Sequence record: NC_061451.1
Length of the DNA stretch: 64,000 bases
Strand: one strand, 5' to 3'
Below, piece by piece: positions 9,069 to 59,491 of the stretch. The translations under genes were made by a program, and so were the position numbers. Each line of letters starts with the position of its first letter. The stretch's first letter is position 1. The notes under the pieces were generated by a model that did no database searches, had not been told where the DNA came from, and saw only the letters and a program-made list of their open reading frames with translations.

Positions 9069-9122
9069 GCACTAATAAGGTCAAAATGACCATTCTCTGC
9101 TATATGCTGCCTATGCTATAAT
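9069..9122 (+). promoter_or_regulatory. Bipartite phage promoter copy 1
   Basis: GCACTAATAAGGTCAAAAT box; TGcTATAAT at 9114-9122; 33 nt from hexamer to -10. Confidence 0.75.
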
Positions 9123-9168
9123 AGTTGCGAGCGCATTGCTCAATACAATCATGCTGAGGAGCATAACA

Positions 9169-9510
9169 ATGAACGCATCTACTTTCGATTTTTCTATCAT
9201 CTGCACCGAGAGCTTCAACATTAATGAGCTGAACAAAATCGCCGTTGAGCTGAACAAGCTGATCACTAACTCGCAGATCAAAATTGAAGCCGCAGAGCTT
9301 GATGATGAAGGCACAGAGTGCATTCTTCTGGCTATCGGCCTCGATGAAGACGGCGAAGAGACTGGCGAGAACGGCTACTCCCTGCATCTGGACAACGGCG
9401 ACTATCAGATCGTATATCTCGGTGTGCCGCATCCTGACTTCGATAAGCACGAACTTGCGACCAGTGACTTCGAGTTGTTCATCAAATCAGTCAACGGCCT
9501 TGAGTTCTAA
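9169..9510 (+). CDS. Acidic hypothetical protein
   Basis: ATG 9169 after GAGGAG. Confidence 0.75.
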   Translation: MNASTFDFSIICTESFNINELNKIAVELNKLITNSQIKIEAAELDDEGTECILLAIGLDEDGEETGENGYSLHLDNGDYQIVYLGVPHPDFDKHELATSDFELFIKSVNGLEF

Positions 9511-9530
9511 TCACTAATCTGGAGTCCAGT

Positions 9531-9884
9531 ATGCGCCCTAACGCCGCAGCACATCTCGCCGCATCTCTTGCCTTGTTTGCGAAACGTAACCGTAGAGCAA
9601 AATTCACTATCTCTACAAAATCGATAATTCAAGCGACTGATATGGGGACTGGTGCCTATATACCTGATCTATTCATTATGCAATTAGACCTAGAGTTGCG
9701 TCTACGTGGTTACATCCTGATTAAACAGGAGGAGACAAACTACATGATAATGAAAGCTAGACCCCGCAATCATGGCCTTCGCATTTCTTCAAATCATATA
9801 GATGAATATATGAACCTGCCTCTTGAAGTAGTCGATCTTCAACTCTCTGAGACGTTGGACACAGAAGACACAGAAGAAGACTAA
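9531..9884 (+). CDS. Hypothetical protein
   Basis: 117 aa ORF, GGAG RBS. Confidence 0.7.
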   Translation: MRPNAAAHLAASLALFAKRNRRAKFTISTKSIIQATDMGTGAYIPDLFIMQLDLELRLRGYILIKQEETNYMIMKARPRNHGLRISSNHIDEYMNLPLEVVDLQLSETLDTEDTEED

Positions 9885-9936
9885 CACTAATCTGGCAGAA
9901 ATCGCCGTTGTGTTTAGACGCTCAACGGCATACTAT
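9885..9936 (+). promoter_or_regulatory. Bipartite phage promoter copy 2
   Basis: CACTAATCTGGCAGAAAT box; TACTAT at 9931; 32-nt spacing. Confidence 0.6.
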
Positions 9937-9985
9937 TATGTCTCTAGCGCAATGACGCGCTACAACAACGAAAGAGAGAAACAAC

Positions 9986-10240
9986 ATGAGCGAAGACGTT
10001 AAAGTAACAATCGATTTAGTAGCTGACTTTGTATCACGCACCGAAGTTGTGTTTGAAGATGGTCAATCATCTAATGACTGGCTCGCGCCGTATGATCTGC
10101 GCCTGAACGTAACTGAGCCGCAAGGGCCGAACGGCTACCCCGAAGTTGAAATCGTTGGCCAGCGCGATAACGTCTTGCGCTTCTTTGATGAGCAGATGCC
10201 TGATAGCGACATTACAGAAGACTCGCTTGAATCTGCCTAA
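9986..10240 (+). CDS. Small acidic hypothetical protein
   Basis: 84 aa ORF followed by terminator. Confidence 0.75.
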   Translation: MSEDVKVTIDLVADFVSRTEVVFEDGQSSNDWLAPYDLRLNVTEPQGPNGYPEVEIVGQRDNVLRFFDEQMPDSDITEDSLESA

Positions 10241-10255
10241 GCAACAAACAACACT

Positions 10256-10277
10256 GTGGCGTTACGGCGCCACTTTT
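10256..10277 (+). terminator. Intrinsic terminator
   Basis: GTGGCG-TTACGG-CGCCAC-TTTT. Confidence 0.7.
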
Positions 10278-10299
10278 CTATTTCTGATCTGAGGTCAAT

Positions 10300-10839: not shown

Positions 10840-10856
10840 TCAACTAGCACAGGGAC

Positions 10857-11486: not shown

Positions 11487-11498
11487 ACAAACAACTCT

Positions 11499-11522: not shown

Positions 11523-11538
11523 TGCTTTGGAGAATACC

Positions 11539-11799: not shown

Positions 11800-11800
11800 C

Positions 11801-12480: not shown

Positions 12481-12488
12481 TAATCTTT

Positions 12489-13842: not shown

Positions 13843-14141
13843 TCTACGAATGGGTCCACGACCTTGAAGGTAACGAAAGTCAGAATCTGCCTATCTTGCC
13901 TCCAGACATTTATGCGTATGTGCGCGATGCCGTCACTGGCGCACGTACCCCAATCAACTTTGAAGGCCGCACCGAGTTACAGCGTCAAGACAAGAAAGTC
14001 ATAGGCGTTGTCTATTGGTCTAATCGAGCTAATCTGATTTCATGGACGGGCGTCGAGCGCTTTCGTTTTACGCTGTATGTAGTACGTGCCGCACATAAGT
14101 CAAATGAGCAACATGAGGAAGCTCAAGTCTGCACTAATTAG
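13830..14141 (+). CDS. Hypothetical protein
   Basis: ORF overlapping upstream stop. Confidence 0.6.
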   Translation: MGDIIYEWVHDLEGNESQNLPILPPDIYAYVRDAVTGARTPINFEGRTELQRQDKKVIGVVYWSNRANLISWTGVERFRFTLYVVRAAHKSNEQHEEAQVCTN

Positions 14142-14183
14142 GCTGAAATAGCTATCGCGCATAATACGCTCCTGTGCTATACT
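14131..14183 (+). promoter_or_regulatory. Bipartite phage promoter copy 3
   Basis: GCACTAATTAGGCTGAAAT; TGcTATACT, -10 at 14178; 32-nt spacing. Confidence 0.7.
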
Positions 14184-14228: not shown

Positions 14229-14660
14229 ATGACTATCAACAAGTTTGACTTTCAAACACTGACTACTCCAGAACAATGGTCTTCCGCTGCTTGGGGTTTC
14301 TATCGTGACTTCGCAGATCGTTTGCGTGATACTATCGGCCGCGATGATCTTTACTTCGACATTGAAGTTGATGGTGGCAGCGATAGCGACCAAGTTGCCG
14401 AAGAGATGGTCGATGATGGTGTGATTCATTTACTCATCTCGTACAAAAACGAAGATGAAGATTTCATTAACGCCAAAGGCGTCTGGCTGTTCCAAGTCAC
14501 TTACCCAACAGAAAGTGATATTGACGGTGAGTGGTCTAACCGCTTCGTGGTCGATGTGCAGACCGTTGATATGGAAATCTTAGAGCTGGTGGACTTTGAT
14601 AACGGCCACCCACGTTTGCTTGAAGATATTGCAGCGCGGGTTAATCACTGGTTAGTGTAA
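14229..14660 (+). CDS. Acidic hypothetical protein
   Basis: 143 aa, AAGGAG RBS. Confidence 0.8.
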   Translation: MTINKFDFQTLTTPEQWSSAAWGFYRDFADRLRDTIGRDDLYFDIEVDGGSDSDQVAEEMVDDGVIHLLISYKNEDEDFINAKGVWLFQVTYPTESDIDGEWSNRFVVDVQTVDMEILELVDFDNGHPRLLEDIAARVNHWLV

Positions 14661-14725
14661 TTGCTTGCGGGTCTTTTACGAAGGGCCCGTCGTCAACAAC
14701 ACAAACCTGTTCTAAGGAGAACAAC

Positions 14726-15043
14726 ATGTCATCATTAGTTAAACTGCAATTCATCTTTCCAGAACTGACCTCAGTTACTGTAACTGTTTCTGATTCTGAC
14801 ATTCCTCGCTATCTCAATATTGCAGCGGGCGCAGAAGTAACATACGAAGGCGAGACGGCGCTGGAGCGTATTACTGACGTAAACCTGCTGCGCAATCTTC
14901 TCGTGGTTGATCGTAAAATCCTAGAGATGTTGCTTGAGCGTCACAACAGCGCAAACGTTTCTAGTGAAATCGCTCACGCTGTAGACCAGATCAAGTTTGT
15001 GCCTAATCGAGGCCTAAAGTTAATCGTCAATCGTTACCGCTGA
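14726..15043 (+). CDS. Hypothetical protein, paralogue of 15108..15425
   Basis: Shared FIFPE, GETA, LL.RH and G..L....R motifs; both 105 aa. Confidence 0.8.
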   Translation: MSSLVKLQFIFPELTSVTVTVSDSDIPRYLNIAAGAEVTYEGETALERITDVNLLRNLLVVDRKILEMLLERHNSANVSSEIAHAVDQIKFVPNRGLKLIVNRYR

Positions 15044-15107
15044 GATTTGTGAAGGGCATTTGCGAGTGCTCTTTGAAAATCCTAAACCCTAAGCTGAGGA
15101 GCTTAAC
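15036..15107 (+). repeat. Duplicated intergenic element (second copy 15418-15490)
   Basis: ACCGCT.AGATTTGTGAAGGGCATT...GAGTGCTCTTTGAAAATC in both copies. Confidence 0.85.
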
Positions 15108-15425
15108 ATGTCATCATCTACTGAATTTCATTTCATCTTTCCAGAGTCAACCACTCTTATCGTTACTGTGGGTAACGGCATCGTCCCTGAGTATATGGGC
15201 ATCCCTGCTAATCAAGAAACCCACCTGACGGGTGAGACTGCATTCAACTTTATGCAGAACTCTAACATCGTGGGCGTTATGAATCGTTTTGATCAGTCGC
15301 TTCTCAATCTGCTTATTGATCGCCATGAGCAGAACGAAGAAGAGGAGAGTGCGTTGCGTCAAGCACACATGCAGAAGCACACGAAGAACTTCGGCGTGTA
15401 TCTGCTGATTAAACATCACCGCTAA
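15108..15425 (+). CDS. Hypothetical protein, paralogue of 14726..15043
   Basis: See partner; GAGGAG RBS. Confidence 0.8.
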   Translation: MSSSTEFHFIFPESTTLIVTVGNGIVPEYMGIPANQETHLTGETAFNFMQNSNIVGVMNRFDQSLLNLLIDRHEQNEEEESALRQAHMQKHTKNFGVYLLIKHHR

Positions 15426-19419: not shown

Positions 19420-19823
19420 CTGAACAACGAATGAGTTATTGCGGTTCACGTTACATCCGTACATCTTCCGGCAAGTGGTATTTGCTTTTCGAACGAGCAG
19501 CCTGCTTGTGCATCAATCGTCATGGTACCCAGTACTGGCGAGCAGGTACGCAAGTGTGGAAGGATGTGTCTCTCTCAACTCGCGCCACTTTGGAGAACGA
19601 GTTTATCAGTCGTACCCGCAAAGATTTCAGGGAGTCGAAGTCTGCGTACAGCAGATGGGGCAAGGTGATTCGTACACTCATTCTAGGTGCAGGCACTAAC
19701 GAGCATATCCACGATTTAGCGTCGATTCTTGAGTCGCTGAGACAGACGCATATAGGGCGCAAGCAACAGCAACTGCGCACTACATTGGATGAAATAGCTA
19801 TTCAGTCAAGAACTACCCTGTGA
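19416..19823 (+). CDS. Hypothetical protein
   Basis: Coupled ORF. Confidence 0.65.
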   Translation: MTEQRMSYCGSRYIRTSSGKWYLLFERAACLCINRHGTQYWRAGTQVWKDVSLSTRATLENEFISRTRKDFRESKSAYSRWGKVIRTLILGAGTNEHIHDLASILESLRQTHIGRKQQQLRTTLDEIAIQSRTTL

Positions 19824-19829
19824 TATAAT
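19777..19829 (+). promoter_or_regulatory. Bipartite phage promoter copy 4
   Basis: GCACTACATTGGATGAAAT; TGaTATAAT, -10 at 19824; 32-nt spacing. Confidence 0.75.
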
Positions 19830-19880
19830 AGCAGCGAACGCTAAACAGTTTCGTTTAGCTACTTACATGAGGATATGTAT

Positions 19881-19982
19881 ATGATTAACAACTACTGCCC
19901 GTTTCGCGCTGTGATGTACCACGCTTCAATCATCCTTCTCGCCATTTGCTCTGGCGTTGTTTTAGCCCACGCACATTTCTGA
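19881..19982 (+). CDS. 33-aa hydrophobic mini-protein (below ORF-track cutoff)
   Basis: MINNYCPFRAVMYHASIILLAICSGVVLAHAHF; GAGGA RBS; first ORF after promoter 4. Confidence 0.5.
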   Translation: MINNYCPFRAVMYHASIILLAICSGVVLAHAHF

Positions 19983-25815: not shown

Positions 25816-26796
25816 ATGCGTTTTGGTTTCGCCTGCAAACTGCTTGATGACAACGGTAAACAACCGTACACGAACAAGAGCCTGAGCTATGCTCACTTCT
25901 CCAAGCTGTCTCAGACAGAGCAGCAAGAAAAGCTGGTGCTCGTCGTCACACACAATCTGACCTCGTTACTTGAGATGATCAGACACGTTGGTCGTCTGCG
26001 TACAGACTTGCGCATGTTTCGAATCACAAGCGAGCTACTTCCGCTGTTCACGCACCCGATGGTCACACGCATGTATCTCCAAACACACATGACCAAACTG
26101 ACAGACACGATGTTGGCAACATGTGGTGCAGCGGCTAGACGTCTTGGTGTTCGACTGTCATTCCACCCTGGTCAGTTTACCGTGCTTGCGTCTGACCGAC
26201 CCGACGTTATGCTCAACTCGATTAACGAAATGGAATATCACGCCTACTGTGCGCAGGCTATGGGCTACGGTCGTAAGTTCCAAGATTTCAAAATCAACAT
26301 TCATTTGAGTGGTCGTCGTGGTGCCACAGGTTTCAGAGACGCCTACTCTCGTCTAAGCGATCATTGTCGCAAGATGATCACGGTAGAGAATGACGAGTAC
26401 ACTTCCTCGATCGAGGATTGTCTTGAGCTTGCCGACATTTGTCCTGTTGTTCTCGACATTCACCATCACTGGGTAATGACTAACGAATACATTCAGCCGA
26501 CCGATGATCGTGTTCAACGTGTCATTGACTCGTGGCGAGGCGTTCGCCCTGTTGCGCATTACTCTGTGTCACGCCCAGAGTTCATACCGTCTACAGGTCT
26601 GCCTGATCAGAACAAGCTAGAAGCAAAGTCTGCCTCGCTGCGTGCTCATTCTGACTACTACCACAATGACAGCGTAAACGAGTGGGCCCTCAGCTTCGAG
26701 CAATTCGACCTGATGTGCGAGTCTAAAGCGAAGAATCTAGCACGCACGAAACTAGCCCTTTTTAAGGGCAACTCTGCACAAATATGGTCAAAATAA
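25816..26796 (+). CDS. uvsE: UV DNA damage endonuclease (UVDE)
   Basis: GFACK, MFRITS, RLSFHPGQF, INIH, VENDE, VLDIHHHW, AHYS, AHSDY, MCESKAKNLA motifs. Confidence 0.95.
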   Translation: MRFGFACKLLDDNGKQPYTNKSLSYAHFSKLSQTEQQEKLVLVVTHNLTSLLEMIRHVGRLRTDLRMFRITSELLPLFTHPMVTRMYLQTHMTKLTDTMLATCGAAARRLGVRLSFHPGQFTVLASDRPDVMLNSINEMEYHAYCAQAMGYGRKFQDFKINIHLSGRRGATGFRDAYSRLSDHCRKMITVENDEYTSSIEDCLELADICPVVLDIHHHWVMTNEYIQPTDDRVQRVIDSWRGVRPVAHYSVSRPEFIPSTGLPDQNKLEAKSASLRAHSDYYHNDSVNEWALSFEQFDLMCESKAKNLARTKLALFKGNSAQIWSK

Positions 26797-26829
26797 GGCT
26801 TGTTTTAGAAGGTGCCCCTATGATACACT
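26776..26829 (+). promoter_or_regulatory. Bipartite phage promoter copy 5
   Basis: GCACAAATATGGTCAAAAT; TGaTACACT, -10 at 26824; 33-nt spacing. Confidence 0.75.
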
Positions 26830-26880
26830 GATTACGAGCACTGTATGCTCGTTTCTACTGATTCAAGAGGATAAGACAAT

Positions 26881-27177
26881 ATGTTCATTACAACTCTAAA
26901 CGCAAACACTGCGAAACCTGCACCGAAAGCAATCAACCACATGAACCTCGACCTTGCACCTTCTGGTCGCATTTCTTGTGTCTGGCCTGGCGCACTCGAT
27001 GTTCCTGCGAACATCAAACGTTTCTGCCGTGCTTGTGAAATCATTACCGACCTTGACCCATGTATGCGTCTTCGTTTCAAAGGTCGTCGCTCTGACGTTC
27101 TGGCGCTCATTACCAAGATCGCTCCTGACAACCCTGACCTCGCAGCGCGAATTGCGGGCACTATCACTGAGGCTTAA
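26881..27177 (+). CDS. Hypothetical protein
   Basis: GAGG RBS; first gene after promoter 5. Confidence 0.75.
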   Translation: MFITTLNANTAKPAPKAINHMNLDLAPSGRISCVWPGALDVPANIKRFCRACEIITDLDPCMRLRFKGRRSDVLALITKIAPDNPDLAARIAGTITEA

Positions 27178-30203: not shown

Positions 30204-30248
30204 CTGGACAAAACAGCGCTTCTTAACGAGGCGCTTTTCTGCTATAAT
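30197..30248 (+). promoter_or_regulatory. Bipartite phage promoter copy 6
   Basis: CACTTAACTGGACAAAAC; TGcTATAAT, -10 at 30243; 32-nt spacing. Confidence 0.8.
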
Positions 30249-30314: not shown

Positions 30315-30617
30315 ATGGCACGTAACATTTCACGCAAGAAAGCGCTCGACCTGATGGCAAAAACTTACAACGAAAAACATCCAGAGTATTTGCCGCGCCT
30401 CATGAAAGAGGACATGAATGCGAAAGACCTGTTCGAATTCCGTGAAGATGTTGTAGCTCAAATTCAGGCAGGTTTGAATCCTGCGAAAGTTGTTGATGAT
30501 ATGATCGACAACGCAATACGCGTCACCACGATGCGCCGCCGTATGAGCAATGATTATAATCCGAAAATCTCCGACGTTCTTACCGATGAACTGCGTGAGG
30601 AACTTCGTAAACTCTAA
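30315..30617 (+). CDS. Hypothetical protein
   Basis: 100 aa ORF. Confidence 0.7.
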   Translation: MARNISRKKALDLMAKTYNEKHPEYLPRLMKEDMNAKDLFEFREDVVAQIQAGLNPAKVVDDMIDNAIRVTTMRRRMSNDYNPKISDVLTDELREELRKL

Positions 30618-35671: not shown

Positions 35672-35716
35672 CTGGACGAAATAAGGCTACTCTGCTTAGG
35701 CTGCTTATGCTATAAT
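35664..35716 (+). promoter_or_regulatory. Bipartite phage promoter copy 7
   Basis: GCAAATAACTGGACGAAAT; TGcTATAAT, -10 at 35711; 32-nt spacing. Confidence 0.8.
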
Positions 35717-39414: not shown

Positions 39415-39711
39415 ATGTCTGAACAAACTCAATTGCCTGGCCAAGTCGTTATCGTTTGTGTTATGCAGGAATCTGATTCTTTCATGGGTCAGAAGTTTGA
39501 TGGCTATGTGTACTTGCTTAATCCAGAACACAAAGAGATGTTTGAACGTCACCTGCAGGCGCACAAAAGTCGTGAGAACTATTCACACATTATCAGCCAC
39601 GCTAATCACTATATAACTAGCACGGGCTTCGATGCGCTTCATGCTGCTATACGCAAAGATGCAAACAGACCCTGGCTGTGGTCAGATACTGATTACACGA
39701 TAACTGCATAA
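39415..39711 (+). CDS. Hypothetical protein
   Basis: GAGGTG RBS. Confidence 0.7.
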   Translation: MSEQTQLPGQVVIVCVMQESDSFMGQKFDGYVYLLNPEHKEMFERHLQAHKSRENYSHIISHANHYITSTGFDALHAAIRKDANRPWLWSDTDYTITA

Positions 39712-39758
39712 ATCTGGACAAAATAGAGGTAGCTAGAAAAAGCTGCCCCTGATATACT
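39706..39758 (+). promoter_or_regulatory. Bipartite phage promoter copy 8
   Basis: GCATAAATCTGGACAAAAT; TGaTATACT, -10 at 39753; 32-nt spacing. Confidence 0.8.
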
Positions 39759-39811
39759 AAAAGCGTAGCTTGTGCTGCGCTTTTTTACTTTCTGTCTGAG
39801 GAGACAACAAA

Positions 39812-40267
39812 ATGAAACCAATCAAAGCAACTGAGGCTGATAAAGCGCTTCAAAACGAATGTATGGACGCTGTTGCTCAGTGTATTATCCTGAACACACC
39901 CGACTGGCGCGATGTAGCGATTGCAGGTTTGCGCCTGTATCTGGTTGCAGCAAAGATGAGCGGCGCGGAAATCCCGTGTATGCAATTCGAACATAACGGC
40001 AAGCCGTGCCGTTTGTCGTTCAAGATGAACCTTGTTGATGAAGGCGAAGAGTTCACTCCGAACGAAGTGAACCAAGCGCACCAGCAAGAAATGATCGAAT
40101 GCATTCTTGCTAAGACCGAAGCGCTCGGCGGTTACAGTTACTTTGATTTGTTCGTTTGCTCAGGCCGCCTATTTATGATTGGCTTCGACGGTATGGCCGA
40201 CACCGTTCCTGCTCTGATGTTCCGCTCAGACAAAAAGAACTACCGCGTTAACTTGATCAACGGATAA
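39812..40267 (+). CDS. Hypothetical protein
   Basis: GAGGAG RBS. Confidence 0.75.
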   Translation: MKPIKATEADKALQNECMDAVAQCIILNTPDWRDVAIAGLRLYLVAAKMSGAEIPCMQFEHNGKPCRLSFKMNLVDEGEEFTPNEVNQAHQQEMIECILAKTEALGGYSYFDLFVCSGRLFMIGFDGMADTVPALMFRSDKKNYRVNLING

Positions 40268-40460: not shown

Positions 40461-40898
40461 ATGAAATTTGATCAAGCACCAACGAAAGCACAACTCGTGC
40501 TGCTGGCCCTCGCTCTCGAATCCGTTCTCCTCTCTATGGAGAAAACGTTTATCAACCGTAATCTGCTGGAGCAGTTACTTGCGAAGTACGGCATCTCGTT
40601 TAACGATCTGAAAGAGTTGCGAGAGTACGGCGAAAAGCATTCCGCCATCGGTACCAGCGTTGCTCAAGTTATGGAGATAGCTGCCTTGCATGTGGCTCAT
40701 CTGAAAACAGAACCTGTGCCTGAATACAGTCAAGACGACCTTGATCTAATTCGCGTAGAATACGAGCCAATCGATACGTCTGTCCTACGCCAGGGCGCTG
40801 TGAATGATGGGGTTATCACAGTGCAGCAAGCAGCCACTTTTGAGCGCGATCAGATACTGACTGCTATTCTTGAGTACCGACTGCGCTCAGAAGCATAA
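40461..40898 (+). CDS. Hypothetical protein
   Basis: ATG 40461 after GAGG. Confidence 0.7.
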   Translation: MKFDQAPTKAQLVLLALALESVLLSMEKTFINRNLLEQLLAKYGISFNDLKELREYGEKHSAIGTSVAQVMEIAALHVAHLKTEPVPEYSQDDLDLIRVEYEPIDTSVLRQGAVNDGVITVQQAATFERDQILTAILEYRLRSEA

Positions 40899-40945
40899 AT
40901 CTGGACAAAATCGTGGTTGTAGCAAAAACCGTCCTATGTTATAAT
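40893..40945 (+). promoter_or_regulatory. Bipartite phage promoter copy 9
   Basis: GCATAAATCTGGACAAAAT; TGtTATAAT, -10 at 40940; 32-nt spacing. Confidence 0.85.
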
Positions 40946-41002
40946 AGAGATGTAGCGTAGACGTGAGGTATGCGCTATAAATTGAATGACGCGTTTTTGC
41001 TT

Positions 41003-41036
41003 GACTGTAAGGTAGCGGTATCTTACAGTCCTTTTT
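41003..41036 (+). terminator. Conserved hairpin plus U-tract (copy A)
   Basis: GACTGTAAG/CTTACAGTC stem then CTTTTT; homologous to 42057-42091. Confidence 0.7.
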
Positions 41037-41154
41037 CAAGTGGCTTCGAAGTTTGAGGCTTCTTGCGAAAGGTCAAATGTACCTTTGAGCGTTTTCGGAT
41101 TTACGCGGTTTTCACCGACTGCGCTCTCACTTTAAACCGCAAAGGAAATACATC

Positions 41155-41976
41155 ATGCCAGAAGCACGCAAACCTCGCCCAGCTGATCGTTTCGCTAAAG
41201 CCCGTGCAGAGAAAAACTCACCGGAGCGTCAAGATGCGGCAGCCCAGCGCACGTATAAAGACACTCCGCCTAAATCTGTTCAGGTGAAACTTGATGCTGT
41301 GGCAGCTTCTAAGAAGAAAGTTTCTCGCGGCCCCAAGGCCTCTCGTCCACGTCAGTCGCCTGCTGTTGACGCAGCACCAAAGCCTCGCATTCGTGATGAG
41401 GAACGTGTGTACAATCTCGTACACATGATTCTCTCTGCGTGGAAAGCCGATGCAGAAAACGCGGCAGCAAGTGTGGGAATCATTAAAGTGTCTCGTCGTA
41501 AGATTGAGGGTGCGTTACGCGATCTCAAGAATACGCGCTTCACTAAAATCCCAGGCTTAATCAATGACGTGCTTGTCTACAATGAACTGGTAGCTGAGTT
41601 CGGACAGTGGGTGTACGTCGAGCACGACAGTCCTGATTGGATTTTTGTGCGCCTGCCTGAAAACAGCACGCCTGTGATTCGCGCTGACATTAGCTATGCC
41701 AAGACGGGTGAAACTTCCACGTCTGTTTCGACTTCTAGTGAAGTTCTGCTGAAAGATCTTAGCGAAGACGAAGAAGATGAGATCCCCGAGAATGTCGAGT
41801 ACGACGATGCGGACGAGACTGACGAAGACGAAGAGGAGCCGTATGACTACAGCGCTTGGTCTCTGCGTGACCTGCAGGAGTATGCGAAGCGCTATGACTT
41901 CTTGCAGCCCGACACTGAGGGGTTTGATGATCGCGAGAAGTTGATAGCAGCCATCGAGCTGGGGGAACAGCACTAA
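41155..41976 (+). CDS. Basic N-terminus, acidic linker, C-terminal HEH-like module
   Basis: YSAWSLRDLQEYAKRYDFL...DREKLIAAIE. Confidence 0.8.
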   Translation: MPEARKPRPADRFAKARAEKNSPERQDAAAQRTYKDTPPKSVQVKLDAVAASKKKVSRGPKASRPRQSPAVDAAPKPRIRDEERVYNLVHMILSAWKADAENAAASVGIIKVSRRKIEGALRDLKNTRFTKIPGLINDVLVYNELVAEFGQWVYVEHDSPDWIFVRLPENSTPVIRADISYAKTGETSTSVSTSSEVLLKDLSEDEEDEIPENVEYDDADETDEDEEEPYDYSAWSLRDLQEYAKRYDFLQPDTEGFDDREKLIAAIELGEQH

Positions 41977-42030
41977 GCACAAATATGGACAAAATAGTGG
42001 TAGCATCTAAAGCATGACCTGTGCTACACT
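41977..42030 (+). promoter_or_regulatory. Bipartite phage promoter copy 10
   Basis: GCACAAATATGGACAAAAT; TGcTACACT, -10 at 42025; 33-nt spacing. Confidence 0.8.
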
Positions 42031-42036
42031 ATAGAT

Positions 42037-42091
42037 CGAATGCCTTGTAGTTTTTTGACTGTGAGTTACTTTCCGGCTCACAGTCCTTTTT
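42037..42091 (+). ncRNA. Candidate short RNA from promoter 10 ending at hairpin copy B
   Basis: No ORF between promoters 10 and 11; GACTGTGAG/CTCACAGTC stem plus U-tract. Confidence 0.4.
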
Positions 42092-42149
42092 AAAGTGCTC
42101 TCCCAAGAACGCTTTAAAAAGCACAGACTGCCTGCGCTTTTGATAGACA

Positions 42150-42202
42150 GCATAAATCTGGACAAAATCATGGTTGTATCAGAATGCTGCCTGTCATACA
42201 CT
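42150..42202 (+). promoter_or_regulatory. Bipartite phage promoter copy 11
   Basis: GCATAAATCTGGACAAAAT; TACACT at 42197; 32-nt spacing. Confidence 0.8.
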
Positions 42203-42263
42203 TTAATGAGTCGAGCAATAGTGCTCGCAACAAACTAAATCCCAATACTGAGGAGTATTACAC

Positions 42264-43853
42264 ATGGCACGTTTCGAAACTAACACTAACCTGGTTGGCA
42301 AAACTATCGTCCTGCTGAACGGCACCAAAGCGAAGATTGAAGACGCTATCGTTTCTGGCTACAAAGTGAAAGGCCAGACCAAGCGCATCGCAACCCGTGA
42401 CGTTATCAAAGAGGGTGCGCACTTTAAAGAAATCGAGCGCACGCCGCTGAGCCAGCTGGAAGATACTGGTGAAGGTTATGTGAAGTTGAAAGAAGCCAAA
42501 GCTGCTTCTAAGAAAGCGCCTGCGAAAGACGCTAAAGCTACTGGCAAAAAAGCTGCGGCAAAAGACAAGCCTGCTAAGACCAGCAAAAAAGCTGCCGCTA
42601 AAGATAAGCCAGCGAAAGAGCAAGAGCCGAAAGTTCGCCGTAAGTCTGCGAAAGAGCAGGGCAACGATTATCAGGAACTCGCGCAGGCTATCATCAAAGG
42701 CGGTCGCCGTGCAGCGCCAGTTGAAATTGACAGCGTAGACGAAGCGCTGACCGATGCAATCGCTAAGCGTCTGACCGCTGTTGTCGAATCGTCTGAGATT
42801 GCGAAACTCGCCGCTGATAACAAAACGCCGATCGCTAACGCACTGACCGTAACTTACGGTGCTGAGTTTGCGACTGATGCAAACGTTGTGCAGATTACGC
42901 TGAACCTGCAATACGCTAAGCCGACTGCTGTTGAGTCTGCCGCTCCTACTCTGGAGAATGCCGAAGCAATCGCAATGCGTGCTGCTAAAATGGCCGCGCC
43001 GAAAGTGAGCGCTAAACTCAAGAAGGCAGTGCGTGAAGCATTCGATATTGAAACAGACCTTGAGCTGGGTACTGTGATTATGTCAGGCGATGATCAATTC
43101 GCTTACTACGGCGAAAGCGCGAAGCACGCTGGCAAAGCGCTGCTGTATGTTGTCGAAACTGACAAGTTCAAATCTGTCTTGGCCTCTACTCTGACCGACT
43201 ACGAACTGCCTGCTGATGAAGAAGCTGAGGCAGAAGAAGAGGAGGAAGAAGAAGAGGAGGAAGAAGAACCCGCTGATGACTTCGACGACGAAGAGGAAGA
43301 AGATGCGGACGATGCAGATGATGCCGACGATGCTGATGGCGACGACGACGAATTCCAGTACGTTGCTGTAGGCGATGAACACTTTGCTCTGGTCAACAAA
43401 AAGATCACAGCCAAGTATCACGATGCACTGGCTGAGCAATTCGGCGTTAGCACCGAAGCGCTGGTCCCAGGCTTAGTGTTGACCAACGGCGAGATCACTT
43501 TCGCTTATCTGGGCAACGATAGCAAAGGCGGCCTGCTCGTTATCGACCTCGACGACGATGCGGACGAAGACGACAACGTTCTGGTCTACCCGAAAGCCGA
43601 CGTTAAATCTCTGACCGACTTCTCTCCTGTGCTGGGTGATGCAGATGAAGAAGACGCAGACGATGCAGAAGAGACCGACGAAGAAGACGAAGATCAGGAC
43701 GACGACTTCGAATTTGACGATGCGCCGACTGCCGACCTCGAAGATCTGTCCGACGATGAGCTGCGTGACCGCGCTGTTGAGATGGGCCTGACCACTGTAC
43801 GCAAAGCTGACAAAATGAACGCCAAGCAACTGCGTGCGCTGCTGTCTGAATAA
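42264..43853 (+). CDS. Multi-domain protein: beta N-domain, Lys/Ala tract, poly-acidic tracts, C-terminal HEH-like module
   Basis: KKAPAKDAK tract; E/D runs; LEDLSDDELRDRAVEMGL...KMNAKQLRALL. Confidence 0.85.
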   Translation: MARFETNTNLVGKTIVLLNGTKAKIEDAIVSGYKVKGQTKRIATRDVIKEGAHFKEIERTPLSQLEDTGEGYVKLKEAKAASKKAPAKDAKATGKKAAAKDKPAKTSKKAAAKDKPAKEQEPKVRRKSAKEQGNDYQELAQAIIKGGRRAAPVEIDSVDEALTDAIAKRLTAVVESSEIAKLAADNKTPIANALTVTYGAEFATDANVVQITLNLQYAKPTAVESAAPTLENAEAIAMRAAKMAAPKVSAKLKKAVREAFDIETDLELGTVIMSGDDQFAYYGESAKHAGKALLYVVETDKFKSVLASTLTDYELPADEEAEAEEEEEEEEEEEEPADDFDDEEEEDADDADDADDADGDDDEFQYVAVGDEHFALVNKKITAKYHDALAEQFGVSTEALVPGLVLTNGEITFAYLGNDSKGGLLVIDLDDDADEDDNVLVYPKADVKSLTDFSPVLGDADEEDADDAEETDEEDEDQDDDFEFDDAPTADLEDLSDDELRDRAVEMGLTTVRKADKMNAKQLRALLSE

Positions 43854-52036: not shown

Positions 52037-52789
52037 ATGGCTAAATCTGCTAAAGTAACCGTAACCGTCGCACAGAAAGTTCTGGCTCAGATGCTGGGTG
52101 TTGTTGTAGCGAACGCAAGCGAGAAAGAACTCGTTGCGATTCTGTCTGACCTGGGCCTGACTGTTGCTGCGAAAGGTAAAGGTGCTAAAGCTGAGAAAGC
52201 TGCGAAAGGCGGCAAGAAAGCTAAAGCCGCTACCGTTGCTCAGATCGTTAAGGCCGTTGAAGAAGAGGAAGCTATCTCCCTCGACGGCGTGAGTGAAGAT
52301 GACCTGCGTGCTGCGGTCGTCAAAGCTAAGCTGGCTAAGGCCAACAAAGCTAAAGCGCTGGACGAAGAGGAGTTGACTGAACTCCTGACCGACGCAATGG
52401 GTGCCGAGTCTGATGAAGACGAGGAAGAGGACGAAGAAGAAGAGGACGAAGACGAGGACGAAGACGACTCGGACGACGAAGACGAAGATGAAGACGACGA
52501 GGACTCAGATGATGAAGATGAGGAGGAGGAAGACGAAGACGAGGATGAAGATGAGGACGAAGATGAAGATCTCGACCTCGACGGCCTCGACGAAGACGAA
52601 CTCCGCGCCCTCGTGATCGACAACAAGCTGGCCACTAAGGCCAAAGCTAAAAAGATGGACGAAGACGAACTTCGTGAACTGTGTGAATCCCACTTCGGCG
52701 GCGACGATGAAGACGAAGACGAAGATGAGGACGAAGACGATGAAGACTTCGACGACGAAGACGAAGACGAAGACGAAGACGACGAATAA
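52037..52789 (+). CDS. Charge-blocked protein: basic tract, two HEH-like modules, long poly-D/E tracts
   Basis: LDGVSEDDLRAAVV...LDEEELTELL and LDGLDEDELRALVI...MDEDELRELC; ATG 52037. Confidence 0.85.
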   Translation: MAKSAKVTVTVAQKVLAQMLGVVVANASEKELVAILSDLGLTVAAKGKGAKAEKAAKGGKKAKAATVAQIVKAVEEEEAISLDGVSEDDLRAAVVKAKLAKANKAKALDEEELTELLTDAMGAESDEDEEEDEEEEDEDEDEDDSDDEDEDEDDEDSDDEDEEEEDEDEDEDEDEDEDLDLDGLDEDELRALVIDNKLATKAKAKKMDEDELRELCESHFGGDDEDEDEDEDEDDEDFDDEDEDEDEDDE

Positions 52790-53002
52790 GTCCTGATCTG
52801 CCGCTGCCCTGCAAGACTAATGAGTGTCTGCGCAGGGCAAGAAATATTCGAAAAATAGTTCGAATTATTTCGCAAAAAGTTTGAAAAATTCCTGTCGTTG
52901 TTTATTGCACATAGTAATATTCGACTACAGGAATTAAACCTGAAAAATTTTACTTTTATCCAACGCGACGAGTCGCACACAATAAATTCACGGAGTATTA
53001 CG

Positions 53003-53515
53003 ATGACTAAGAAAATCATTTCTGGCCTGAACAAAAACCTGAAAGCTATCGCTAAATCAGAAGCTGCCCTGGCCAAAACTGTTGTTGCTACCAACAAAGA
53101 GATCGAAAACCTGGGTTCACAGCGTGCTGGTATCGAAGCGCAGATCGCTGAACTGTCTGGCGTTGCTGCTCCTGCCAAAGCTGATAAAAAAGCTAAAGGC
53201 GCGAAAGCAGAAAAAGCGGCCAAGCCTGCTAAAGCTGAAAAAGCAGCTAAAGCCGGTAAGAAAGAAAAAGCTGCTAAAGCTGAAAAGCCTGCCAAAGCTG
53301 ATAAAAAAGCTAAAGGCGCGAAAGCGGATAAAGCTGCTAAGCCTGCCAAAGCTGAAAAAGCTGGCAAGAAAGAAAAAGCTGCTACCAAGCCTGCTAAAGC
53401 TGATAAAAAAGCTAAAGGCGCCAAGGCCGACAAAGCTGCTAAAGGCGGTAAAGCTGACAAAGCCGGTAAGAAAAAGAAAGCGCAGTCTGATGACTTCGAA
53501 TTCGAAATGGAATAA
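53003..53515 (+). CDS. Histone H1/AlgP-like Lys-Ala-Pro protein with N-terminal coiled coil
   Basis: PAKADKKAKGAKA repeats; ends DDFEFEME; ATG 53003 after GGAG. Confidence 0.8.
   Translation: MTKKIISGLNKNLKAIAKSEAALAKTVVATNKEIENLGSQRAGIEAQIAELSGVAAPAKADKKAKGAKAEKAAKPAKAEKAAKAGKKEKAAKAEKPAKADKKAKGAKADKAAKPAKAEKAGKKEKAATKPAKADKKAKGAKADKAAKGGKADKAGKKKKAQSDDFEFEME
53171..53430 (+). repeat. Coding tandem repeat (3 units of ~102-117 bp)
   Basis: CCTGC(C/T)AAAGCTGATAAAAAAGCTAAAGGCGC at 53171, 53288, 53390. Confidence 0.85.
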
Positions 53516-54849: not shown

Positions 54850-54865
54850 GTCAAATTTGTCTCTA

Positions 54866-54918
54866 CACTAAGCTGGACAGATCGTGGGTAGCGTCTGACG
54901 CTCTGCCTATGTTATAAT
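54866..54918 (+). promoter_or_regulatory. Bipartite phage promoter copy 12 (upstream of topoisomerase)
   Basis: CACTAAGCTGGACAGATC; TGtTATAAT, -10 at 54913; 33-nt spacing. Confidence 0.75.
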
Positions 54919-54989: not shown

Positions 54990-57014
54990 ATGGCGAAAAC
55001 GCCTAAAGCCGCAAAAGTCAAAAAGGGTGACGGCTCCCAAGATGGCTTCACTATCGCAGAAGGCCTCGACGGTATAAGATTGAATCCCGGCATGTACATG
55101 GGTCAACAGGGCGCGGACATGGCGTATCGCGCTGTGAAAGAACCTGTGGACAATGACTACGATGAATACATCGCAGGTCGTAACAAGTTGATCGAAGTGG
55201 TCATTGATTACGATAGCGACCTGAACATCGTAGCTGACCAAGCAGGCGGCATTCCTACCGACTTCAAGAAACTGAAAGACGGTACGAAAGAAACGATCAT
55301 GACCGCAGCGTTTAGCCGTGTTCATGCGGGTGGTAAATTCAACGATCAGGCATATAAGACCTCTGCTGGTACACACGGTGTAGGTGTAGCTGCACTGAAC
55401 GCAATCTCCAGTCAGTTGCGTGTGTGGTCAATGTACAAAGGCAGTTGCGCTTATCAGATGTGGCAATGCGGCGAAGTCAAGTCTGGCAAAGACCCTAAGA
55501 AAGTCAAGACCATCGACAAAGACGTTATGAGCCTGTTGCGCGATAAGAAGCACAGCAAGTACGGTACTGTGGTAGCGTGGACGCTTGACCAGACCGTTGT
55601 GTCTGCTGATGCACAGCGTGGTAAGAAGCTGCCTAAGAACTACCGTCACGCTGCTCCTAATCCAGCTCAGCTTGGCGAGTGGCTGCGTAACATGTCAATG
55701 CTCAACCCAGGCCTTGAGATTCGCCTGACGTTGATCAAGAAGGGCAAGCGCAAAGAGTTCACGTTCATCAACAAGAAAGACCTGAACTATGTTGTGAAGA
55801 CTATGTGTGAAGAACGCGAGCTGGGTACTGTCGGCAAGCCGTTCATCTTCAAGTCTGACAATATCACGGCTGCGCTCGTCTGGACAGATCATGCAGACAC
55901 CGACAACTTCCTCAGTTTCGTTAACACCAGCCCAACAGTTGACGGCGGGTGGCATGTAGTAGGTTTCCGTGATGCTCTGTTTGATGCAATCAAGCCGTTC
56001 ATGAAAGAACCGAAAGGTAAGGGCAAGAAAAAGCAGGGCTTCAAACAAGAAGACTTGTTGATTGGCCTGACCGGTATGTTCGACTGGCGTATGCACGGTG
56101 CTCAATACACCTCGCAGGTAAAAGACAAGCTGGCCAGCCGCGTCGAGAAAGACGTGTACGAAATGCTGAAAGATGCTTTCGTGAAATACTTCAAGGACAA
56201 TAAGAAGGTCGCTACGACAATCATCAAACGTGCCGAAGCGATGAACAAGGGACGTGAAGAACTCAGCGCTGTCGTTAAGTCTATGGCTGACACGAAGAAG
56301 AAGCTGAAAGGTAACGCACTGCCTGCCGACCTCGTTGTCGCAAACAAGTGTAAGCCGCATGAGCGCGAGCTTGTCGTGGTGGAAGGGGATTCTGCTGGTG
56401 GTACTGCGAAAGATGCGCGTAACCCTGACTATCAGGAAGTTATGAAAGCTGGTGGTAAGCCGCTGAACGGTCTGAAAGCAAGTCTGGCTGACGTGCTCAA
56501 GCACAAAGAAGTGCAGGGTATGCTGGTGAGTATCGGTGCTGACCTGAAATCACTTGACCCGAAAGCAGAAGCGCCAAAGTTGAGCACGAAGAATCTGCGT
56601 ATCGGCAACATCCTGTTCCTTGCTGATGCTGACCCCGATGGCTTCCACATCAACGTGCTGTTCCTCGGCGTTATCTATCGCTTGCTGCCTGACTTGATGA
56701 AAGAAGGCCGTGTGTGGATTGTTGATGCACCGCTGTACAACGTTATTCATCAAGGCAAACACTACGGTGGTATGACGTTTGAAGAATGCCGTGCTAAAGC
56801 GCCGTCTGCTGTAAAAGACAAAGACATTGTACGCGCCAAAGGTTGGGGTGAAGTTGAACCTGACGTGCTTGAAGCAATCGCGTTCAATCCGAAAACTCGT
56901 CGTCTCATTCGTGTTAACCCGTTTGAGAACGTCGAGCAGGAACGTTTCTTTAGAGGTGTAGTTGCAGAAGATGCAGTTCACCGTCGTCGCTTGCTCGGTC
57001 TGGAGGCAGCATGA
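54990..57014 (+). CDS. gyrB: Type IIA DNA topoisomerase B subunit (GyrB/ParE-like: GHKL ATPase plus TOPRIM)
   Basis: IRLNPGMY, EPVDN..DE, HAGGKF, GTHGVGV, VEGDSA, DADPDG.HI, KGWGE; ATG 54990 after AGGAG. Confidence 0.92.
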   Translation: MAKTPKAAKVKKGDGSQDGFTIAEGLDGIRLNPGMYMGQQGADMAYRAVKEPVDNDYDEYIAGRNKLIEVVIDYDSDLNIVADQAGGIPTDFKKLKDGTKETIMTAAFSRVHAGGKFNDQAYKTSAGTHGVGVAALNAISSQLRVWSMYKGSCAYQMWQCGEVKSGKDPKKVKTIDKDVMSLLRDKKHSKYGTVVAWTLDQTVVSADAQRGKKLPKNYRHAAPNPAQLGEWLRNMSMLNPGLEIRLTLIKKGKRKEFTFINKKDLNYVVKTMCEERELGTVGKPFIFKSDNITAALVWTDHADTDNFLSFVNTSPTVDGGWHVVGFRDALFDAIKPFMKEPKGKGKKKQGFKQEDLLIGLTGMFDWRMHGAQYTSQVKDKLASRVEKDVYEMLKDAFVKYFKDNKKVATTIIKRAEAMNKGREELSAVVKSMADTKKKLKGNALPADLVVANKCKPHERELVVVEGDSAGGTAKDARNPDYQEVMKAGGKPLNGLKASLADVLKHKEVQGMLVSIGADLKSLDPKAEAPKLSTKNLRIGNILFLADADPDGFHINVLFLGVIYRLLPDLMKEGRVWIVDAPLYNVIHQGKHYGGMTFEECRAKAPSAVKDKDIVRAKGWGEVEPDVLEAIAFNPKTRRLIRVNPFENVEQERFFRGVVAEDAVHRRRLLGLEAA

Positions 57015-57268
57015 TGTTCAACAACGCAAAATGGTCTGACGGTACGATGCTACGTTTTCTCGATATGCCTGACGTCCAGCATCCGCCAATGACCGAAGAA
57101 CAACACAAGCAGTATGAGGCGTTAATGGCAAAAGGTCGTGAGTTGTCGAAAAACGTTACTGTATCTGCATTCAGTGTAGTTGACGGTAAGCCTGCTAAGC
57201 GTGTGCAGGTGCAGATGAGTCGCACAACTCTCGATAAGATTAATGCGATGCACTCAGGAGATCAGTAA
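57011..57268 (+). CDS. Small protein, paralogue of 57268..57507
   Basis: FLDMPDVQHPPMTEEQH. Confidence 0.65.
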   Translation: MMFNNAKWSDGTMLRFLDMPDVQHPPMTEEQHKQYEALMAKGRELSKNVTVSAFSVVDGKPAKRVQVQMSRTTLDKINAMHSGDQ

Positions 57269-57507
57269 TGCTCAAGGGTAAGAAAGTCAACCAAGCACCG
57301 TCGCGTGCTGCACGAATCTTTCCTGTAGTCGCTGGTACAGAGCACTGGCATATCCCGTTGTTCGATATGCCTGACATTCACATCAATATGAGCGAGGAGC
57401 AGAAAGCTCGTCTTGATTCTGCTATGGCTAACGTCAAGCAACACATTAAAGATAGCCCGTACAACGGGAAGCGATTCTTTACTATGCCTGGAGATGCTCA
57501 TGAATAA
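57268..57507 (+). CDS. Small protein, paralogue of 57011..57268
   Basis: LFDMPDIHINMSEEQK. Confidence 0.65.
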   Translation: MLKGKKVNQAPSRAARIFPVVAGTEHWHIPLFDMPDIHINMSEEQKARLDSAMANVKQHIKDSPYNGKRFFTMPGDAHE

Positions 57508-57739
57508 GTTCCAGCGTCACATTAAATCTCTGCCCGAATCTGGTGCCAGCTTTCAGCAAGCAGCACCGCTCGGCCGTACTGTCGTAACACATTCAGCGGG
57601 TATCACACGCGGTGTAACTCGCATGGCTTATCCTCAGTTGCAGCAAATCCCGCGCAACTTATCGGGCCTGAATGATGTGAACGTTCGTCGCATCGATATT
57701 AACTTGGATGAAAACGTTTTCATCCAGACGCATTCGTAA
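57500..57739 (+). CDS. Small hypothetical protein
   Basis: ATG 57500 after GGAG. Confidence 0.55.
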   Translation: MNKFQRHIKSLPESGASFQQAAPLGRTVVTHSAGITRGVTRMAYPQLQQIPRNLSGLNDVNVRRIDINLDENVFIQTHS

Positions 57740-57748
57740 GAGGCTGGC

Positions 57749-59410
57749 ATGCCAATCAAACCTAAGAAAGTCAAAGCGGCCAAAGCAGTTAAGCCTGCTA
57801 AAGCGACCGCCGTTGCAAAGCCACTTAAAGTCAAAGTGAAGTCGAAAGCCGTTTCTGTCGATGACATTAAGACGAAGAAAAAGTCGAAAGAAGTCGCCAC
57901 AGTGCAGACAGGCGCATCGCTCTATCCGATGATTGGTCAAGACGAATCGAACATTCGTGATCAGGGCCTCGCAGATTACACACGCCACGCGCTGGGTGTG
58001 TACGGTTCTTACGTTGTTGAAGACCGTGCTATCGCTGACTATCGTGATGGCCTCAAGCCTGTGCACCGTGCGCTGCTGTGGTCGTTGTCTGATCTTAACT
58101 TGCGTCCTGGCGGTGCGTTCAAGAAGTCTGCGCGTACTGTTGGTGACACGATTGGTAAGTATCACCCGCACGGCGATGCAGCCTGCTACGGCGCAATGGT
58201 AACGATTGCAAACACAGTGCCCCCAGCTGTTGCGGGTTCTGGTAACTGGGGTAGCCCTGTTGACCCTGCTGCTGCGATGCGTTATACCGAAGCGAAGATG
58301 AGTAAGTTCACGGGCACGTTCTTGCTCGACTCTGATTACTTAGAAGTTGTGCCGCGTGTGCCTAACTTCTCAAACGATCTTGAGCTGCCGCTTTACTTGC
58401 CTGCTCTGTTGCCGTACATGTTGTTCAATGGCTCTGTGCCTGCACCAGCGTACGGCGTTAAGTGTGGCAACCCGTCATTCAGCTTCACGTCCGTATCTAA
58501 AGTCGTGTGTGAGATGCTGAGCGGCAAAGAGTACACAGCGAAGACGCTGGCGAAGACGCTTGAGATTCGCCATGAGTTCGGCTGTATCGACGTTAGCTCT
58601 GACGAAGATATGTACCAGCTTATCTCAACAGGCCGTGGCAAAGTCACATACGAACCGCTGATTAAGATCGATGAGAAGTCGAAGACCATCACGATTCAAA
58701 CGTATGTGCCTGCTGGCATGTCCAATACTGCGGGTATCACTAAGAAGCTGGAGAAGATTTCTGAGTGGCCAGGCATTAGCTCCGCAGCAAACGCCAGTGG
58801 CAAGAAGAACAAGAACGCAGGTCCTTACGGTGCAGCGTTTGAGTTCCGCGTACGTGGTAGTGAAGACCAGTTGTACGAACTCGCCTCACGCATTCAGAAG
58901 GAAGTGACTGCTGGCGTCAACTACAATCTGGGCGTTACGATTCGTCGCGCCGATAAGCCGAACACCTTCAAGTATCTGAACTATCTGGATTACTTCAAGG
59001 CGTGGGTAGCGTATCGTATCAAACTCGAAACAGCCATGCTGAACAACAAGCTGGCCAAAGCAGAGAAAGCCCTGCACTTGCAGCAAGTTTATCTGTGGGC
59101 AGTTGACAACATGAAGCAACTGCTGGCAGCCTTGCCTAAAGTGTTAGTCGCAGAAGATCCAGACAAAGCGCTGGCCAAAGCGTGCAAGATTCCAGTTGAA
59201 GATGCGAAGATCATCCTCGACCGTCAAGTGCGTAAGCTCGCCAAGCTGGAACGTGGTGGTCTGATTGCCAAAATCAAAGACATTAAGGAAGAGATTGCTG
59301 GATATAAGGCAGGCTTGAAAGCGCCAGGCAAATATGCAGCACAGAGCACGGCTGCTAAAGTCAAAGCGTACATCAAATCACCTGATGATAAGCTGCCCGT
59401 AAGTCTTTGA
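57749..59410 (+). CDS. gyrA: Type IIA DNA topoisomerase A subunit (GyrA/ParC-like, no C-terminal pinwheel)
   Basis: RAIADYRDGLKPVHR, KSARTVG, KYHPHGD, AAMRYTE (catalytic Tyr). Confidence 0.92.
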   Translation: MPIKPKKVKAAKAVKPAKATAVAKPLKVKVKSKAVSVDDIKTKKKSKEVATVQTGASLYPMIGQDESNIRDQGLADYTRHALGVYGSYVVEDRAIADYRDGLKPVHRALLWSLSDLNLRPGGAFKKSARTVGDTIGKYHPHGDAACYGAMVTIANTVPPAVAGSGNWGSPVDPAAAMRYTEAKMSKFTGTFLLDSDYLEVVPRVPNFSNDLELPLYLPALLPYMLFNGSVPAPAYGVKCGNPSFSFTSVSKVVCEMLSGKEYTAKTLAKTLEIRHEFGCIDVSSDEDMYQLISTGRGKVTYEPLIKIDEKSKTITIQTYVPAGMSNTAGITKKLEKISEWPGISSAANASGKKNKNAGPYGAAFEFRVRGSEDQLYELASRIQKEVTAGVNYNLGVTIRRADKPNTFKYLNYLDYFKAWVAYRIKLETAMLNNKLAKAEKALHLQQVYLWAVDNMKQLLAALPKVLVAEDPDKALAKACKIPVEDAKIILDRQVRKLAKLERGGLIAKIKDIKEEIAGYKAGLKAPGKYAAQSTAAKVKAYIKSPDDKLPVSL

Positions 59411-59439
59411 AAATCTGTAAATAGACTATGATAAACTCT

Positions 59440-59491
59440 GCACTAAGTTGGACAGAAGCCGCTTGAGATTATTCTTAGTCTATGATATACT
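59440..59491 (+). promoter_or_regulatory. Bipartite phage promoter copy 13
   Basis: GCACTAAGTTGGACAGAAG; TGaTATACT, -10 at 59486; 31-nt spacing. Confidence 0.7.

Follow-up and report, generated by a model that had tools for sequence, protein, structure and literature searches.

Which RNA polymerase reads the repeated promoter-like elements of a jumbo phage, and what draws it to them? We addressed this in the last 64,000 bases of NC_061451.1 (hereafter the window; window position = record position − 201,635), which by Megablast shows 100% identity to Erwinia phage pEa_SNUABM_7 and its near-identical sibling pEa_SNUABM_14. pEa_SNUABM_7, a myovirus with a genome of 265,635 bp, is placed in the genus Snuvirus, within the PaBG/Lu11 ('Lupandier') jumbo phage group. 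As phages of this type lack an RNA polymerase, and NC_061451.1 annotates none, the host enzyme must be reprogrammed. The window contains 13 copies of a 19-bp box at a fixed distance upstream of a −10 hexamer. These repeats are a real promoter family, most likely comprising all of the early promoters that recruit the host RNA polymerase.

All 13 boxes listed in an initial annotation of the sequence were found where it had placed them, on the + strand, and three of them (39706, 40893 and 42150) are identical 19-mers. The IUPAC consensus given there was too narrow, fitting exactly at only 4 sites, and we therefore replaced it with a 23-column matrix built from the 13 sites, with which both strands of all 265,635 bp were scanned. 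The 13 sites scored between 20.4 and 31.5 bits and the next best 14.6 bits. As nothing else in the whole genome lies above 14.6 bits, the set is complete. The 19-mer with three or fewer mismatches was seen 5 times, compared to 0.01 expected by chance. The sites are all co-oriented with genes, within a block of small genes of unknown function at 210–261 kb, and no annotated function was found among the first genes of the 10 (out of 12) box-promoter units that were scanned. The annotated exception among the genes served is that for the topoisomerase II large subunit (gp337, 54990–57014), which lies behind the box at 54865 and so belongs to the regulon, as originally claimed.

The anatomy of the promoters was defined from an alignment of 42 sites in five phages, comprising the 13 sites here and orthologous or paralogous sites in Alexandra, Dickeya phage AD1, Y3 and JA29. 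The consensus was aAcTct GCA.AaAactGGacaAAAT ag.ggTtg..t, a 17-bp spacer, and cct.TGa TAtAaT a, with aactctGCAyWAAnnTGGACAAAAT as the upstream block. The unit is not bipartite, as first described, but has four or five parts: the box, a weak −35, a TRTGn-type extension, the −10 and, usually, a stem-loop. A phage element does stand upstream of the −10 at a fixed distance; its position, given originally as −45 to −62, is −59 to −41 at all sites, with a conserved 'aactct' 5′ extension to about −65. The end of the box is 28 ± 1 nt from the −10 across the 42 sites and 27–29 nt in the window, equal to the spacing of 31–33 reported between TGGACA and the −10. TG is present at 39 of the 42 sites (11 of 13 in the window, in agreement with an extension described as usual), within a cct(a/g)TGn consensus, and the −10 has the expected forms TATAAT (six sites), TATACT (three), TACACT (three) and TACTAT (one), so that T−12, A−11 and T−7 in a hexamer near TATAAT are found at 13 of 13.

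The −35, described as degenerate, is indeed weak but not random. It consists of T followed mostly by T/A, 5–6 nt past the box and at a spacer of 17–18 bp, where the hexamers match TTGACA in only about 1–4 of six positions. Its first T was read at all 13 window sites and is kept in at least 75% of the 42-site alignment, in which T-t-g precedes TRTGnTAtAaT by a 17-bp spacer.

Comparison with relatives from other genera (Alexandravirus, Sasquatchvirus and Salmondvirus, whose topoisomerase proteins are 66–93% identical) revealed a phylogenetic footprint. At orthologous sites in Alexandra, AD1, Y3 and JA29 the flanks are essentially unalignable (~0.3 identity), while box positions C2, A3, G11 and A17 have an identity of 1.0, G12 of 0.93 and the −35 T of 0.97. 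Against a 97.3%-identical congener, the 12 boxes compared were identical at 297 of 297 bases and TGn/−10 at 108 of 108; the neighbouring segments were 98.2–98.8% identical. The identity of the three identical copies ends at the box edges, and they are therefore not recent duplications. Stop codons of upstream genes end at, within or just past the box at seven sites (box positions 1–21), and an eighth upstream gene, before the box at 19777, has coding sequence that passes through the box into the spacer. Since the stop codons fall at differing positions and one gene runs through, the conservation is not a coding constraint.

A scan of IMG/VR with the commonest form of the box served as a natural control. 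It gave 15 matches on ~260-kb jumbo-phage contigs, all carrying, at the right distance, a −10 of the TAnnnT type. The remaining matches, which arise by chance and from one conserved coding segment of unrelated phages, lack such a −10, with one possible chance exception (L027). With this matrix, the Pseudomonas relative HRDY3 gave no box-like sites. Neither the box motif nor any promoter class for this phage group was described in the literature searched, which lacked some subscription papers on Y3 and Lu11, and searching with motif strings returned only unrelated primer sequences.

To which class of genes do these promoters belong? Inspection of all intergenic gaps of at least 40 bp identified two further motifs. 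Class M (aTCTGTAAAyA) lies ahead of the sigma, SSB and UvsX-region genes, and of further genes of replication type, on both strands. Its co-oriented upstream sites number 23, compared to 1.2 expected, and no site is wrongly oriented. In the form aATCTGTAAAyA it is found in the window at 1905, 2698, 11481, 12521, 23909, 51243, 51268, 51923, 51982 and 59415 (the last directly upstream of the box at 59440), and at 198174 of NC_061451.1 before the sigma gene. It is conserved about 40 nt 5′ of the sigma gene in eight relatives with differing flanks. Class L, (g)CTAATTT/TAATTT, precedes many structural genes and also has 23 co-oriented upstream sites (1.0 expected), at 4685 and 5373 in the window and at about 20 positions on the − strand of the record at 50–186 kb. 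It has no −35-like partner and is reminiscent of single-block late promoters. Genes are on the + strand at 1–46 kb and 186–265 kb, and the structural and replication block is on the − strand.

When the gaps were ranked by their resemblance to TTGACA-N16–18-TATAAT, the top consisted mostly of box promoters, together with one site without a box at 59631–59659. Of the early/middle regulon originally proposed, the early part is plausible: the box promoters are almost the sole σ70-like promoters in intergenic gaps, and the other gene sets stand behind two other motifs, so that the box class is distinct from the motifs of the replication, sigma and structural genes. The box promoters are probably the early class, and the three motif classes together suggest an early (host σ70), middle and late programme of the T4 kind.

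What, then, does the box do? The −10, TGn, spacer and residual −35 are Escherichia coli-type σ70 elements, and we therefore take the sites to be promoters for the unmodified host polymerase. The explanation that we favour, and to which we give an even chance of being right, is that the 13 elements are early promoters in which host σ70 polymerase reads the core and the box is an upstream activating element for the C-terminal domain of the polymerase α subunit (α-CTD). On infection, unmodified host σ70 polymerase would recognise the TRTGn-extended −10 and the weak −35 at 17–18 bp, and the 19–25-bp box (−41 to −59/−65) would supply the missing affinity where two α-CTDs dock. AA steps are conserved in the box at −54/−53 and −43/−42, about 11 bp apart, and may represent the two α-CTD subsites. 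Promoters boosted in this way could outcompete those of the host, as T4 early promoters do, and the short stem-loop probably shields the transcript at its 5′ end. The position is that of an upstream (UP) element, between −40 and −60 and next to the −35, at all sites. Furthermore, the 3′ end of the box (CAAAATAG) is similar to a proximal UP subsite, and the match to the UP consensus is 6.8/14, compared to 4.4/14 for background, and is best in the proximal subsite. Three steps are inferred, namely reading by host σ70, the early timing of the class and reading of the box by α-CTD, and the last of them is the least secure.

Several observations weigh against this explanation. The box is 45–68% A+T and does not have the A/T-rich proximal and distal subsites of the UP consensus; a C at −58 and GG at −49/−48 are invariant; and the information content of ~27 bits, preserved from genus to genus at the level of single bases, is more suggestive of a site for a sequence-specific protein. 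An internal 10-bp direct repeat (GCACTAA/GGACAAA) was weak and not specific to its offset (0.44–0.47 at offset 10 compared to 0.41–0.42 at offset 11). NC_061451.1 annotates gp209 as an RNA polymerase ADP-ribosylase; this label reflects a single partial PHROG match (E 2.6e-13), and an NCBIfam search with gp209 gave no match. The ranking of σ70-like promoters covered gaps of at least 40 bp, such that promoters inside genes could be missed, and no transcriptome or promoter map for the PaBG/Lu11 group was found in the literature searched.

The low A+T, the invariant C and GG and the ~27 bits, which make the box far more specific than any UP element, therefore make an asymmetric dedicated factor a serious rival. 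In one version, which we regard as possible, host σ70 again reads the core, and the box is the site of a dedicated sequence-specific activator that would act from about −50 in the manner of class I. This activator could be made early by the phage (in which case the promoters would be delayed-early or middle), enter the cell together with the phage DNA, or belong to the host. Such an activator would account for the high information of the box, its invariant G/C positions and its base-by-base conservation across four genera, and also for the strict spacing between box and −10 and for a weak −35, as is found at activator-dependent promoters. A co-varying variant in the Salmondvirus lineage (GTGTCC for CTGGAC) would fit the co-evolution of a phage protein and its site, and the box-less σ70-like promoter at 59631–59659 could be the immediate-early start. 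Nonetheless, no candidate DNA-binding protein was found among the first genes of the 10 units scanned, and a requirement for a phage-made activator would leave hardly any early promoters in the genome. The box also lacks dyad symmetry (best score 0.41 compared to ~0.25 for random sequence, with perfect arms of 5 nt or less), unlike the sites of CRP, Mor, C and Ogr.

Somewhat doubtful, in our view, is a second version, in which the box is not an UP element and a new asymmetric, sequence-specific factor docks at about −50 on host σ70 promoters, either a virion-delivered or immediate-early phage protein or α-CTD respecified by the ADP-ribosylase.

Two boxes in JA29 (L012, 3190 and 6632) count for the explanation that we favour. 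They have the variant form CTGCAAA..GTG(C/T)C..AAAT (TCTGCAAA..AGTGTCCAAAAT), followed by TCTGTAAACT or TCTGTAAAAT at the −10 position, and so lie 27 nt 5′ of TCTGTAAA(C/A)T in place of TATAAT, with the box joined to a class M core. This combination hints that whatever reads the box is independent of the type of −10.

It is improbable that the box is an operator, where a phage protein made after infection would bind at −41 to −65 and shut the early promoters at the early-to-middle switch by blocking the docking of α-CTD or polymerase. The box abuts the −35 on every member of the one class that must be shut off, and its sequence-specific conservation goes beyond the need of an UP element. However, a fixed spacing to the −10 would be typical of activation and is unneeded for occlusion, the A-tracts at α-CTD positions suggest a positive role, and the operator would have no dyad symmetry and no candidate repressor.

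Could the phage's own sigma factor read these promoters? In that case the C-terminal part of gp244, which the record annotates as a sigma factor encoded just upstream of the window, would read the box and its region 2 the TATAAT-like element. The phage does encode a σ70-family protein, as gp244 matches PHROG 17569 and a σ70-like factor has been described in PaBG, with HHpred evidence for the PaBG homologue (PMC7412058). For gp244 itself there was no PDB sequence match and no NCBIfam match, and its AlphaFold model is confident only in the N-terminal ~170 residues (mean predicted local distance difference test (pLDDT) score 59, and <50 for residues 207–328). A recognition element 31–33 bp from the −10 is out of reach of sigma region 4. 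Moreover, the two other abundant motif classes need a reader, and the −10, TGn, −35 and 17-bp spacer fit host σ70. The sigma gene itself stands behind class M, in the form aTCTGTAAAtA, in the eight relatives, and the conserved gp244 segment SYVKWWILNAQT (WWILNAQT, putative region 2.4) differs from region 2.4 of σ70. Because of the host-like elements, the different motif before the sigma gene and the differing putative region 2.4, reading by a phage sigma factor, as offered in the initial annotation, is very unlikely.

We give least credence of all to a box without a role in initiation. It would then be a signal in RNA that reads through from upstream, or mark the edge of a recombination cassette and merely accompany the promoters. 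The stop codons in or beside the box at seven sites, and the coding sequence through it at an eighth, do mean that the box is transcribed in read-through RNA, and the promoters are concentrated where gene content varies. However, the spacing to the −10 is constant (28 ± 1 nt) in 42 sites, the likeness of the identical copies ends at the box edges and the stop codons lie at differing box positions.

Among known systems, the box promoters are best filed beside T4-type early promoters, which are their closest precedent. T4 early promoters have the arrangement 'UP/−35/TGn/−10' with extra conserved regions, and Alt and ModA ADP-ribosylate Arg265 of α, which modulates activity (PMC2988021). In both cases there is no phage polymerase (here, none annotated), the −10 is extended, many copies lie in a block of small early genes, extra sequence is conserved between −40 and −60, with A-tracts near −42 and −52, reading by the host holoenzyme is immediate (here a prediction), and a phage enzyme is annotated as ADP-ribosylating the polymerase. 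In contrast to T4, the −35 here is weak (T, T/A only), the box is not simply A/T-rich and has an invariant C and GG, the consensus is different, and there is a 5′ stem-loop. The UP element of E. coli rrnB P1 and of systematic evolution of ligands by exponential enrichment (SELEX; −38 to −59) has the same position relative to the −35 and −10, a proximal part like CAAAATAG and the AA steps, but it is nearly all A/T, and the distal half of the box (GCAy..nnTGG) is off its consensus.

Promoters of the T4 middle type (MotA/AsiA) also combine a phage-specific element with a host-type, often TG-extended, −10. However, the MotA box is nine bp, centred at −30, and replaces the −35 (PMC2988021), whereas the box here is centred near −50 and a T(T/A)G −35-like element remains. 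We therefore rejected a MotA-type middle promoter, and the difference in geometry pointed out at the outset stands. Phage promoters with class I activators (Mu Mor/C, P2 Ogr/P4 Delta and CRP-type) are similar in their weak −35 and in having an upstream site at a fixed distance. The Mor/C, Ogr/Delta and CRP-type sites are dyad-symmetric, and a site of this kind was rejected for the asymmetric box.

Other candidates fared no better. A σ54 promoter was rejected, as the conserved GG at −49/−48 has no GC 12 nt downstream and the −10 is of the TATAAT type. By eye, the box did not fit the consensus of IHF, Fis or CRP. Its left part (TGCACTA) resembles an NtrC half-site, a possible lead, but its right half does not. 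A hairpin in the spacer that would move TGGACA into the −35 register was also considered; by eye, the inverted repeats of the spacer differ between sites, and the idea was dropped. A −35 in the normal position is present instead. Finally, the PeSL cassettes of T4-type phages are reportedly units of an early promoter and a stem-loop, with the stem-loop before the promoter. They resemble the present elements in being repeated early-promoter modules with stem-loops that flank small variable genes, and differ in that here the stem-loop lies 3′ of the −10, where the transcript begins, and covaries between genera.

Such a stem-loop, a few nt into the predicted transcript, is found at about 9 of the 13 promoters. 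The first 40 nt predicted to be transcribed are more structured than random windows (mean −8.4 compared to −6.4 kcal/mol, P about 0.01), and compensatory changes keep the stem in two orthologous sets, at 3 of 6 pairs for promoter 11 and at 2 of 7 pairs for promoter 4.

The individual promoters, all on the + strand, are as follows in window coordinates. Promoter 1 (9063–9122) has its box at 9069–9087 and its −10, TATAAT, at 9117–9122, and serves gp256 (9169–9510). Promoter 2 (9878–9936; box 9884–9902) has TACTAT at 9931–9936 without TG and serves gp258 (9986–10240); the stop codon of the preceding gene ends at box position 1. The box of promoter 3 (14125–14183) is a AGGCTGAAAT variant at 14131–14149, with TATACT at 14178–14183 ahead of gp268 (14229–14660). 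That of promoter 4 (19771–19859) lies at 19777–19795, within the 3′ end of gp279, and is followed by TATAAT (19824–19829), a 5′ stem-loop (19840–19859) and gp280 (19881–19982). Promoter 5 (26770–26851) likewise has a 5′ stem-loop (26835–26851), with the box at 26776–26794 and TACACT at 26824–26829, and serves gp297 (26881–27177). Promoters 6 (30190–30248; box 30196–30214; TATAAT 30243–30248) and 7 (35658–35716; box 35664–35682; TATAAT 35711–35716) serve gp304 (30315–30617) and gp314 (35759–36433), respectively.

Promoters 8 to 10 carry terminator-like hairpins. In promoter 8 (39700–39790; box 39706–39724; TATACT 39753–39758), which serves gp321 (39812–40267), a strong hairpin with a T-run (39759–39790) begins 1 nt past the −10 and is conserved in three genera. 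With the predicted start inside its 5′ arm, this hairpin could stop read-through from upstream and spare transcripts that start here. Promoter 9 (40887–41036; box 40893–40911; TATAAT 40940–40945) is followed by a hairpin and then by a terminator-like hairpin (41003–41030) with a T-run, and has gp324 (41155–41976) downstream. Promoter 10 (41971–42091; box 41977–41995; TACACT 42025–42030) has a terminator-like hairpin at 42057–42085, again with a T-run. The hairpins of promoters 9 and 10 are similar, lie within 55–85 nt and read GACTGTAAG..CTTACAGTC and GACTGTGAG..CTCACAGTC, each followed by CTTTTT. We predict that 40952–41036 (~85 nt) and 42037–42091 (~55 nt) give short non-coding RNAs or attenuated leaders.

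The stretch homologous to ~40998–41092 in pEa_SNUABM_13 (L087, 30896–30990) is called a 95-nt tRNA-Glu(UUC), both by ARAGORN and in the record. In the window the call is lost through a few substitutions in the region of the T-arm (GGGTTCGATACCC to GGTCAAATGTACC). Either a tRNA-like element has decayed at 40998–41092 or the call itself is false. ARAGORN found no tRNA in the window, and there was no match to Rfam families.

Promoter 11 (42144–42227) has its box at 42150–42168, TACACT at 42197–42202 with TC for TG, and a 5′ stem-loop at 42212–42227, and serves gp325 (42264–43853). The topoisomerase gene gp337 is served by promoter 12 (54859–54918; box 54865–54883; TATAAT 54913–54918). Promoter 13 (59434–59491; box 59440–59458; TATACT 59486–59491), with the class M motif at 59415 just 5′, serves gp342 (59766–61040). 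The box-less site between this promoter and gp342 has the form TTGACC-17-TATAAT. Alexandra, AD1 and Y3 show strong conservation of its −10 (TACTATAAT-CGACC) and of a leader of ~110 nt, which suggests that 59631–59766 includes a conserved structured leader before gp342.

Three further features were observed. At 14660–15425, two adjacent intergenic regions are near-identical (GATTTGTGAAGGGCATT..GTGCTCTTTGAAAATC) and precede the 318-bp genes gp269 and gp270, suggesting a tandem gene duplication. At 52702–53003, the 3′ end of gp333 consists of a GAAGAC-type (acidic) codon repeat and is followed by a 214-bp A/T-rich gap with a 20-nt inverted repeat (52887–52906 and 52916–52935) and repeated TTCGAA-like words. 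Beyond the window, at 86656–87974 of NC_061451.1, a 1.3-kb stretch without an annotated gene lies inside the block of tail genes.

The 13 box promoters, with the aTCTGTAAAyA and CTAATTT classes, provide a testable three-class promoter map. The conserved 25-bp element either extends the range of sequences that α-CTD can read or marks an unknown activator. If a dedicated factor is responsible, then jumbo phages of Erwinia and Dickeya, in four or more genera, would redirect the host polymerase in a way that is distinct from sigma appropriation by MotA/AsiA in T4. The box promoters are also candidate strong, compact promoters for work in Erwinia and other enterobacteria, and should help to define the early genes of phages considered for the biocontrol of fire blight.

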